From NCBI GenBank assembly GCA_033442325.1, contig JAWQFM010000027.1, forward strand, positions 935,047 through 998,957: a stretch of 63,911 bases of DNA. The letters run 5' to 3'. Below the pieces are notes generated by a model. The model searched no databases. It was not told the DNA's origin and saw nothing but the letters and a program-made list of their open reading frames with translations. This document shows positions 25,246 through 28,086 of this stretch, one piece after another (position 1 is the stretch's first letter; every line of letters begins with the position of its first letter). The DNA comes from Salpingoeca rosetta. Lineage: Eukaryota > Protista > Choanoflagellata. The position numbers and the translations under genes were made by a program.

Positions 25246-28086
25246 CTACTTGACGCAGCAACCCACGCTCACAACAACACCCTTCCTCGCGCCCTCACTC
25301 ATGCGGCTGTTGATGGCGGTGCACCAGTCAGCGAGCGAGGCGTCAGAGCGGTCGTCTGGGCGGAAGACGAAGGTTCGCCCGGGAACGGCGACGCGCAGCT
25401 CTTCGCCACCATGGGCAACCTCAGCTGACAGCACACTTGACAGGGGAATGTGTCGCTTGGCCGTGCCTGATGCAGCATTGCCGTACGCCAAGTGTCCATC
25501 GTCAAGCTTGCACCAGCACGGGCGAAAGGTGCCCCTCCGTCGCCCACGTTTCCGCAGCCATCCGGTAAGCGGCTGCTGTGGCGACCCATCTTGGCTTGTT
25601 TCATCTTGCTGGCCGGCAAAAGCTTGCGCCTTGCCATCGCCGCTCCCTTCTTGTACCTGGTTCAGCTCCTGCTCCTCCTGCTTGTTACTGTCGCCATCCT
25701 CCTCTTCCTTCCCATCTTCCTCCTTCTTCTCCTCCTCCTCTTCCTCCCCATCTTCCTCCTTCTTCTTCTCCTCCTCCTCCTCCTCTTCCTCCCCATCTTC
25801 CTCCTTCTTCTCCTCCTCCTCTTCCTCCCCATCTTCCTCCTCCTTCTCCTCCTTCTTCTCCTCCTCCTCTTCCTTCCCATCTTCCTCCTTCTTCTCGCCC
25901 ACCTTCTCCTCCAGCTCCTCCTCCCCCACCTCCTTCTCCTCCTCCTCCTCCTCCTCCTCCTTCTTCTTCTTCTCCTTCTCCTCGTCATGATCATCTTTAC
26001 CGCGAACGTGCCGCAGGCTGAGTATCGCCTTGCGCGTGTTGGGATGGTCTGGCCCCAGCGTGGCTTCAAACACACCAAGCGCCCGCTCCACGTAGGCGCT
26101 AGCCTGCTCCTTGTCGCCGCGGTCGCCGTGCAGCAGGCCAATGTTCTCAAGCGCCATCGCTGTGCTCGGGTGGTTCTCGCCAAACGCCTCCACCCTGATG
26201 GCAAGGGCCTTCTCAAGGTACTCAACGGCCCTGTCGAAATCGCGCTGCTCGACGTACACGTTGCCGAGGTTGGTGTAGGTGTCCGCCGTGGCCGGGTGCT
26301 TGTCGCCAAACGCCTCCAGGTAGATGGCCAGGGCCTTCTCAAACTGGTCTGTGGCTTTGTCGTGGTCGCCCTTCTCGAGGTAGGCAATGCCGAGGTTGCC
26401 CAGCGTCATGGCCGTGTTCGGGTGCTTGTCGCCAAGTATCTCCACCATGATGGCAAGCGCCTTCTCGATGAACTCAATGGCCTTGTCATACTCGCCTTTG
26501 CTGAGGTACGCAATGCCCAGGTTGCCGTATGTCATCCCTGTGTTCGAATCCTTGTCGCCAAGCGTCTCCACAAACACTTCATTCGCCCTCGAGTAGCATT
26601 CAATCGCGCTGTCGTAGTCGCCCTTGTGGCGGTGTAATTCGCCGAGGTTGTTGTGGGTTTCCGCTGTGGTCGGGTGCTTCTCGCCCAGCACCTCCACCCG
26701 GATGGCGAGCGCCTTCTTGTAGTGTTGGATGGCCTTGTCGTACGCGCCCTTGCGTCGGCACGCGATGCCCAGGTTGTTGTGCAGCGTCGCCACGTTCTCG
26801 CCTTTCTTCCCCTCAGTCCGTCGATAGATCAACAGGGCTGTCTCGTAGTACGCGATGGCCTGGTCATGCTCGCCAAACGTGTTCAGCACAACGCCAACCT
26901 GGCCGCACAGCTGCGCAAACGCCTCCGTCTTGTGCTCGCGCCTGGCCCGCATCGCCTCCACCGCAGCCACCGCCTTCTCCAGGCACCACGCGCGCAGCTG
27001 GTCCTTCACGGCCTGGTTGAGTGCACCAAAGCCCACGCCGTTCTGGATGGCCTCAAAGATCATGTCCTTGTCGCGTGGGTTGAAGGCCTCAGCACGCTGC
27101 GCCTGCACTCGCACCAGCGTATCCGTCACGGCCTCGTACTCGTCTTGGATGGCGTCTTCCAGCGCCTTCTCTTCGCTCTTGGGCAGGCGGATGTTGACCT
27201 CTGTGCCCTCGTTGCTGATGCCGCAGAAGATCTCCCACAGGCACCACGCACGGGTCAGTGGGACGGGGTCACGCCACGGCATCAACACCAGCAGCACGCG
27301 CCCAATGTTGGCAATCGACTCCTTGAACGTCGTGCTCCACCTGTTGTGTGTGTGGTGGGCGAGGGTGTTGGGGTGGAAGGGAGGAGGGGGGGGCAGCGTG
27401 TAAGGGGGTGGATGTGTGCAAAAACGGCGAGGTCGAGTTCAAATTGCACGCACACACACACACACACACACACACACACACACACACACACACACACACA
27501 CACACACACACACACACACACACACACACACACACACACACACACACACACACGCACGCACACAGCTGCCCACACACACACACACACACACACACACACC
27601 CTGGAGGTGCCCACACACACACACACACACACACACACACACACACACACACACACACACACACACACACACACACACACACACATAGACGCACCACTCT
27701 TGTGGGAGGTTGGCCGTGACGTTGGCGTTTTGGTTGTTCATGAAGAGGTCAAACCAGAAGAACACGGGCTTGCTGTCTTCCTTCCGTGCTTGCTCCTTCG
27801 CAAACTCTAGCAGCACGTTGAGCACGTCCGCGATCTTGTATCGCCACGCGTGCGACACAAACACAGTGGCCTTGCCCACCCTTTTAGGCGATTGTTTGCG
27901 CAACAGGTCGACGTACGCGCAGTTGTCCTGCTGTGTGCGTGGCACAACCAGTTGCTTGCAAGCATCCGCCGTGGTCATCTCAGTGTACTTGCTGGGGAAC
28001 TTCTTCTTCAGGTCTGCGAGGAAGGCCTTGATCGCGGCCACAGACACACCGTCTGTTAGGCGGTGCTCGTCGTTGCCGTTGGCCAT
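25246..28086 (-). CDS. TIR/HET-like domain + seven 42-aa kinesin-light-chain-type TPRs + acidic linker + PH domain; 2 exons
   Basis: Exons 28086-27695 and 27340-25246 (junction QEW|WSTTF, phase 2). N-domain VFVSHAW...FFWFDLF...VLLVL...TRAWCLWE; TPRs NNLG..Y...G.YDKAI..YEKALAI....LG.KHP; E/K repeats; PH LTGWLRKRG...WCKL...RTFVF...WCTAI. Confidence 0.85.
25696..25985 (-). repeat. Coding tandem repeat encoding (EEEEE-KK-EEDG)n acidic linker
   Basis: Recurring cccatcttcctccttcttctcctcctcc units between the TPRs and the PH domain. Confidence 0.9.

Follow-up and report, generated by a model that had tools for sequence, protein, structure and literature searches.

A predicted extended TIR-like domain joined directly to TPR repeats and a PH-like domain in a large, dispersed protein family of the choanoflagellate Salpingoeca rosetta

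What kind of protein stands behind a gene that is named only after its repeats? This question is raised by a locus of the choanoflagellate Salpingoeca rosetta, which lies in a stretch of 63,911 nucleotides (contig JAWQFM010000027.1, here C27:935047-998957; the whole stretch is called the window) of a 55.4-Mb, 68-contig assembly (GCA_033442325.1) that served as the searched genome. The minus strand of the window carries a two-exon gene, and both exons are identical to a database protein of 828 residues, P0001, which bears the name ‘mbre TPR repeat protein’. A first-pass annotation had proposed that the region preceding the TPRs is a hidden TIR/HET-like domain with an intact catalytic glutamate. 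TIR domains are an immune enzyme common to bacteria, plants, and animals. From sequence comparison and predicted structures, we conclude that the N-terminal domain is a divergent, extended TIR-like domain in a TIR-TPR-PH architecture without an NTPase, and that it fails the Pfam models for both TIR and HET.

The motifs on which the TIR-like reading was built are present on the minus strand as the first-pass annotation had read them (VFVSHAW, FFWFDLF, WWSTTFKESI, VLLVL, and TRAWCLWE); VLLVL corresponds to residues 146-150, TRAWCLWE to residues 160-167 (27255-27232), and WWSTTFKESI straddles the splice junction. An alignment of 109 homologous domains reveals 95-100% conservation at F76, S78, H79, A80, W81, W111, D113, W132, F136, P152, P156, R161, A162, W163, C164, L165, E167, D221, I225, and G234. 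Within this set R161, W163, C164, L165, and E167 reach 100%, S78, W81, and D113 reach 99%, H79 98%, and W111 97%, and they are followed by W131 (93%) and Q119 (91%). The glutamate singled out by the first-pass annotation is conserved in 109/109 homologues and also among paralogues, where WCLWE is retained in 65 of the 66 genomic copies of exon 2, all of which were fetched. Given the conservation in the homologues, the motifs lie far beyond what chance would produce in a sequence, and the near-invariance of Ser, Trp, and Glu is a pattern typical of an active site. The sole exception among the 66 copies (L094, C5:2281635-2282030) reads N-A-Q-C-L-W-D in place of R-A-W-C-L-W-E, with loss of the Arg, the Trp, and the Glu, and may be an inactive or decoy member.

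Judged from these alignments, the domain retains three pocket residues of enzymatic TIRs, namely S78 in βA and W163 and E167 in the C-helix. The Trp and Glu of the WxxxE motif (W204 and E208 in AbTir) are involved in substrate binding and are needed for the NAD+-cleaving (NADase) activity of TIRs (PMC10641520), while in SNC1 and SARM1 a distance of 2.6-2.7 Å separates the catalytic Glu from the βA serine, which NADase activity likewise requires (10.1101/2025.04.09.647920). Catalytic mutants of this kind are recorded in PDB entry titles (RUN1 E100A and SARM1 E642A).

This observation is strengthened by a profile comparison in which the family alignment was set with hhalign against an alignment of six genuine S. 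rosetta TIR_2 exons. The comparison gave a score of 35.0 (P 4.3e-5, probability 69%), with 12.5±3.0 (maximum 25.1) for 150 column shuffles and 15.9 for the reversed template, and provides statistical support, at the level of sequence profiles, for a relationship of the domain to genuine TIR domains. In the extended alignment V-F-V-S-H-A-W falls on V-F-L-S-Y-T-W and W-F-D on W-M-D, αB and βC are included, and C164 and E167 stand opposite the C and E of the TIR_2 C-helix. A TIR_2 exon compared with the PDB in turn matched Cat1 (E 4e-9), PdTIR, and AbTir, and the TIR_2 Glu falls on their Glu. The βA strand of PdTIR reads F-I-S-H-A-W, which is the F-x-S-H-A-W pattern of the window protein, and the C-helix of Cat1 reads W-C-W-D-E-L, which matches its W-C-x-x-E-[IL]; the W-x-D of βB is common to enzymatic TIRs.

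The predicted fold points in the same direction. AlphaFold2 models were made with family alignments for two homologues that have every invariant residue in common with the window protein: P0065 (384 residues), with a mean predicted local distance difference test score (pLDDT) of 83 and a core above 90, and the domain-only P0130 (293 residues), with a pLDDT of 91.3 and a predicted template modelling score of 0.89. In both models DSSP assigns the order N-terminal helices, βA-αA-βB-αB-βC, a long loop, αC with the Glu, βD, and further helices, and in P0130 E195 sits in αC (helix 190-201). In a Foldseek search of the P0130 model against the PDB, TIR domains made up nearly all rows listed as far as rank 36, with RPP1 as the best match (E 2.2e-3, probability 0.99), followed by RPPT, SNC1, RUN1, RPV1, MAL, SARM1, TRR-2, ROQ1, SpbK, and TIR-1; ThsB and nucleoside 2'-deoxyribosyltransferases appear below those TIR rows. 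With the same model, a VIA search of 48,161 chains, which is independent of Foldseek, yielded 25 chains at Z >= 5, all of which, except two uncharacterised entries, have TIR, ThsB, nucleoside deoxyribosyltransferase, or DprA/ShosA folds and cover 112-132 of ~140 target residues. The best of these were 7m5h (6.5), SARM1 (6.4), TRR-2 (6.2), MyD88 (6.2), and ThsB (6.1). When the Foldseek candidates were rescored, SARM1 and AbTir reached Z 6.9, and 49 of the top 50 were TIR, deoxyribosyltransferase, or the recurring 7m5h. A first VIA-wide search with the 384-residue P0065 model was swamped by its helical tail and gave the same picture once the tail was discounted. Because the scores themselves are modest in height, the fold argument rests on the specificity of these match lists. 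On the strength of the models, the N-terminal domain has a TIR-like fold, and the TIR order of secondary structure suggested in the first-pass annotation is borne out; the hhalign alignment and αC of the models likewise put Glu167 at the predicted W-x-x-x-E position of the C-helix.

The domain is an extended unit of 265 residues in which helical parts flank the TIR core on both sides. It shares the order of strands and helices and the fold with the enzymatic TIRs (TIR_2 PF13676; PdTIR, AbTir, Cat1, RPP1, RUN1, and SNC1); these comprise ~140 residues, whereas the window domain comprises ~265, including a conserved helical N-terminal part of 70 residues. It further differs from them by a longer CC loop (P-W-x-D-P-x-P-L-T-R), by helical C-terminal extensions, and by the additional invariant residues Q119, W131, W132, R161, D221, and N239.

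The Pfam scans (hmmscan) covered both exons together with two kinds of homologue, four without TPRs and three that consist of the domain only, and L041, a paralogue that has no intron; four of the homologues and L041 were also scanned in NCBIfam and PADLOC. At E up to 10 neither the exons nor 8 homologues yielded a Pfam TIR family (TIR_2 PF13676 and TIR PF01582), and nothing scanned reached the gathering score of these models. The best TIR_2 score, 13.5 bits against a cut-off of 28, was obtained on L041 alone, where TIR_2 is the only Pfam match (E 0.11) and residues 220-310 fall on profile positions 1-77, from βA to αC. This divergent paralogue (C5:521000-526000, open reading frame 1630-3888 on the minus strand, 752 residues) carries a low-complexity insertion of ~115 residues between the N-terminal helices and βA. 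Across the genome the TIR_2 model matches 52 places, none of which belongs to the TIR-like-TPR family. An ESM Atlas search restricted to named clusters gave no usable match.

The HET-like part of the earlier proposal came down to a resemblance of motifs, since Pfam HET (PF06985) gave no match at E up to 10 in the exons or in nine family members; a genome-wide PF06985 scan also gave no match, yet its controls gave none either. The three HET blocks presumably resemble S-H-A-W, W-F-D-x-x-x-x-N-Q, and R-A-W-C-L-W-E. Elsewhere in the genome, a genuine TIR_2 domain of 37.9 bits (L051, C34:54054-57269, 1426-1956 on the plus strand) reads A-V-S-Y-S-W-G in βA and C-W-I-D-I-R-N-I in βB, which we take to resemble the first two HET blocks; its position may be intermediate between TIR_2 and sequences of the HET type. 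A family member at C23:1190688-1191787 (plus strand) has as its neighbour, at a distance of ~2 kb on the other strand, a TIR_2 match of 26.9 bits that stays below threshold (C23:1193998-1194303); the two could represent a pairing of hidden and canonical TIR types. HET is described as a TIR-related cell-death domain that stands N-terminal to TPR, ankyrin (ANK), or WD repeats; Dyrka et al. 2014 reported its remote homology to TIR and found homologues in stramenopiles, haptophytes, choanoflagellates, and green algae, among them one S. rosetta sequence annotated as HET by Pfam (PMC4986451). The reported taxon range of HET is the same as that of the window family, a likeness that concerns distribution and not a direct comparison of sequences.

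Behind the TIR-like domain, the TPRs begin at about residue 259-270, within ~10 residues of its end, and match Pfam TPR_12 (E 3.3e-104, 7 stretches), TPR_10 (7.1e-66), and TPR_NPHP3 (107.9 bits). The direct fusion proposed in the first-pass annotation was recovered, as the Pfam scan of the protein found no NTPase family (NACHT/NB-ARC) and no Walker A motif was found in the sequence. An acidic linker leads to the PH-like domain, and several paralogues carry a precomputed PF00169 assignment or the name PH domain-containing protein. Identity as a kinesin light chain was considered and rejected: TPR_12 is present, but the N-terminus is an α/β TIR-like domain and not the coiled coil of heptad repeats through which kinesin light chain binds the heavy chain.

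Comparison with known systems places this architecture among several relatives without equating it with any of them. SARM1 (ARM-SAM-TIR) likewise lacks an NTPase and joins α-solenoid repeats to a TIR NADase, and its TIR domain belongs to the highest-scoring structural matches (Z 6.4-6.9 over 117-122 aligned residues). In SARM1, however, the repeats are of ARM type, a SAM module provides octamerisation, and the TIR domain follows the repeats, whereas the window protein has TPRs, no SAM, and an N-terminal TIR-like domain; SARM1 is also low-copy (PMC9153377), in contrast to the ~66 copies of the window family. TeTIR, found in TEP1/NWD/NPHP3 proteins, is a Glu-dependent NADase whose TIR-like domain is also extended (200-350 residues) and missed by standard TIR models (10.64898/2026.09.21.753143). 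TeTIR proteins end in TPR or WD40 repeats, and the window TPRs match Pfam TPR_NPHP3. TeTIR contains an RWG loop and is invariably followed at once by a NACHT ATPase (10.64898/2026.09.21.753143); membership was rejected, as the window protein has neither NACHT nor RWG, and it also lacks a Walker A motif. Plant TIR-NB-ARC-TPR proteins (TNP/XTNX) and bacterial TIR-STAND-TPR proteins share the N-terminal TIR and the C-terminal TPR_10/TPR_12 array (PMC9153377; an example in PMC13142454). Both groups possess a central STAND NTPase switch, and the fungal HET receptors in question have a central NACHT or NB-ARC, while the window protein has none of these and joins its TPRs directly. Clades that are highly diverged and uncharacterised are described in a 2026 atlas of eukaryotic TIRs (PMC13142454).

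The gene belongs to a dispersed family of ~66 copies, with each exon matching 66-67 places in the genome (exon 1: 66). A word search that used the domain's second half as query returned 168 proteins at E ≤ 0.001, from S. rosetta, Monosiga, and other choanoflagellate transcriptomes, from Aphanomyces (in an ankyrin fusion), a labyrinthulomycete (with EF-hand), a green alga, a chytrid, and an acoel, and from many metagenomes; in none of the 168 is a precomputed Pfam family placed on the N-terminal domain. In the ESM Atlas the domain groups with unannotated haptophyte, chlorophyte, and oomycete clusters, some of them fused to DUF285 or methyltransferases, and proteins of ~290-314 residues that consist of the domain only also exist. 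In the closest paralogues, identity to the window protein amounts to 81-92% over the N-terminal domain and to 43-64% over the next 300 residues, which hold the TPRs. The TIR-like domain is the most conserved part of the family, and the TPR arrays are much more divergent.

Within this family, a subfamily of 20 copies that are 81-85% identical to exon 2 of the window has 16 members <=100 kb from a contig end, where 13% would be expected (binomial P 3e-11); examples are C7:25028, C21:12396, C20:16439, C29:16986, C33:30125, and C20:1269954. For the window gene itself the distance to the C27 end is 101 kb, and the subgroup of this gene is not enriched at contig ends. One exon-2 match (C17:75056-75457, minus strand) is located inside a reported open frame of 9024 residues, either a giant open reading frame or an artefact of a masked stretch.

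Taken as a whole, the best explanation, which we hold with somewhat more confidence than doubt, is an intracellular protein composed of an extended TIR-superfamily domain, TPRs, an acidic linker, and a PH-like domain, with an NAD+-processing head gated by the TPRs. The TIR-like domain would cleave NAD+ or a closely related nucleotide at the N-glycosidic bond, leading to depletion or to a signal of the adenosine diphosphate ribose type. The TPR solenoid would bind a ligand or protein and thereby control self-association and activity of the TIR-like domain, by analogy with the ARM repeats that control SARM1 and with STAND-less TIR systems, and the PH-like domain would put the protein on a membrane. 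The most plausible setting would be a role in conflict, either defence against viruses or bacteria or self/non-self cell death. We consider the functional part of this explanation plausible as a hypothesis.

Several points weigh against an NAD+-processing TIR enzyme. A scaffolding role is common among TIRs, and enzymes of the deoxyribosyltransferase/DNPH type, which act on other substrates, have a conserved Glu as well. The N-terminal domain (residues 1-265) has no match in the Pfam, NCBIfam, and PADLOC scans except the sub-threshold TIR_2, and in sequence searches of the PDB neither phmmer nor a 6-sequence profile retrieved a TIR. The models are those of homologues that are 32-37% identical to the window protein; DSSP gives four clear strands where five are canonical; and the structural scores are modest, with Z at most 6.9, root-mean-square deviations of ~4 Å, and Foldseek E >= 2e-3, in a range (Z < 8) where, according to the tool, a match may reflect only a common arrangement of elements. 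The placement of Glu167 in the pocket derives from alignment and secondary structure and not from coordinates, and neither SAM nor a STAND NTPase nor any other module for oligomerisation is present in the protein.

Such considerations leave room for three other explanations. The same TIR-superfamily fold might carry out another chemistry on a different N-glycosidic or nucleic-acid substrate, for example nucleotide hydrolysis of the DNPH1/MilB/deoxyribosyltransferase type or the synthesis of 2',3'-cyclic nucleotide monophosphates (2',3'-cNMP) from RNA or DNA that has been reported for plant TIRs. This would agree with the presence of nucleoside 2'-deoxyribosyltransferases and MilB among the structural matches (Z 4.5-5.8) and with invariant residues that have no canonical TIR counterpart (H79, Q119, W131, W132, R161, and D221). 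The invariant Cys164, three residues before Glu167, also recalls the cysteine beside the Glu that is important to plant TIRs for their 2',3'-cNMP synthetase activity (PMC9153377). TIR chains nevertheless rank above deoxyribosyltransferases in every structure search, and the trio of Ser, WxD, and WxxxE is the signature of TIRs that cleave NAD+; we regard another chemistry as unlikely. A non-catalytic adaptor, in which the domain would serve only for homotypic assembly or to recruit partners, as MyD88/MAL do, and the Glu would be structural, appears quite improbable. The TIRs of MyD88, MAL, TIRAP, TRIF, and the IL-1R family match about as well as enzymatic TIRs (Z 5.3-6.2), and such a role was first proposed for HET by Dyrka et al. 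2014 (PMC4986451), but Ser, Trp, and Glu together vary little or not at all among very distant protists and in 65/66 paralogues. The catalytic Glu is absent from some TIRs (PMC9153377), and adaptor-type TIRs are therefore under no evident constraint to retain it.

The least probable explanation, to which we give very little credence, is a housekeeping TPR scaffold, that is, a cargo adaptor resembling kinesin light chain (KLC) or a membrane tether, with a regulatory N-terminal domain and no connection to conflict or cell death. The TPRs are indeed of the KLC/NPHP3 type, one paralogue bears the database name ‘kinesin light chain’, and the PH-like domain suggests membrane tethering. Set against this are an N-terminus without the heptad repeats of KLC, the ~66 dispersed copies with divergent TPRs and one subfamily concentrated near contig ends, and the occurrence of the same domain in other protists as a fusion partner of ankyrin, EF-hand, DUF285, and methyltransferase modules. 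Copy number, TPR divergence, and varied fusions together fit an effector module better than a conserved housekeeping adaptor.

The positions of all features of the gene are collected in Table 1, in which the secondary structure of the second half of the domain was mapped from the homologue models onto the window protein through two alignments (A1 and A2). The exons were searched one by one, and the joined reading was taken from the database record P0001, in which the 828 residues divide into 130 + 1 + 697 and W131 is made across the junction. The splice is supported because P0001 is identical to both exons, the intronless L041 reads continuously across the junction, and the homologues of other species do likewise; paralogue exon matches also begin and end at the same residues as the exons of this gene.

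Table 1. Features of the TIR-like-TPR-PH gene (positions in the window; residues of P0001)
Feature	Position	Strand	Residues	Description
Exon 1	27695..28086	-	1-130	Begins with ATG 28086-28084; 130 codons + 2 nt; N-terminal helical part, βA, αA, βB, start of BB region
βA motif VFVSHAW	27844..27864	-	75-81	Ser78, counterpart of the conserved TIR βA serine
βB motif FFWFDLF	27742..27762	-	109-115	W111 and D113; Q119 follows
Intron	27341..27694	-		Phase 2; GT 27694-27693, AG 27342-27341; mostly (GT)n microsatellite
Exon 2	25246..27340	-	132-828	Ends with stop codon 25248-25246; remainder of TIR-like domain, TPR array, acidic linker, PH-like domain
TIR-like domain, second half	26938..27340	-	131-265	αB, βC, CC loop, αC, βD, C-terminal helices
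C-helix W163-C164-L165-W166-E167	27232..27246	-	163-167	Glu167 codon GAG 27234-27232; putative catalytic glutamate
Seven kinesin-light-chain-type TPR units	26029..26958	-	~259-568	42-residue perfect register
Acidic low-complexity Glu/Lys-rich linker	25615..26022	-		64 Glu + 24 Lys in 152 residues
PH-like domain	25300..25563	-	~724-811	PF00169, E 6.8e-5, 23.8 bits vs cut-off 25.1

A second long (GT)n/(AC)n microsatellite, besides that of the intron, lies just 3' of the gene at 24943-25242, and the same type of repeat also interrupts fetched S. rosetta TIR_2 genes. The gene immediately downstream (21885-24845, minus strand) encodes major vault protein (Pfam Vault 3.5e-68, MVP_shoulder 7.9e-53). 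The vault-associated TEP1 has recently been reported to bear an extended TIR-like NADase domain (10.64898/2026.09.21.753143); given the ~66 dispersed paralogues, the adjacency of the vault gene is probably a coincidence.

For the family as a whole, a TIR-type catalytic signature here lies hidden from all standard domain models, and the domain that bears it is spread over haptophytes, oomycetes, green algae, chytrids, and an acoel, in fusions to TPR, ankyrin, EF-hand, and other modules. We know of no established means by which fungal HET domains kill cells. A tentative and rather doubtful extension of our reading is that the family forms a distinct and very large eukaryotic TIR/HET branch, in which a Glu-dependent NAD+-processing effector would be combined with a variable TPR sensor and a PH anchor and would operate with no NTPase switch, linking fungal HET to the TIR enzymes of bacteria and plants. 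If true, the eukaryotic TIR repertoire would gain a large branch that has gone unrecognised, and an NTPase-less receptor-enzyme architecture would be at hand in an organism with CRISPR genetics and host-microbe assays. As far as the conserved residues indicate, annotation pipelines that name such proteins only ‘TPR repeat protein’ miss a probable enzymatic head.

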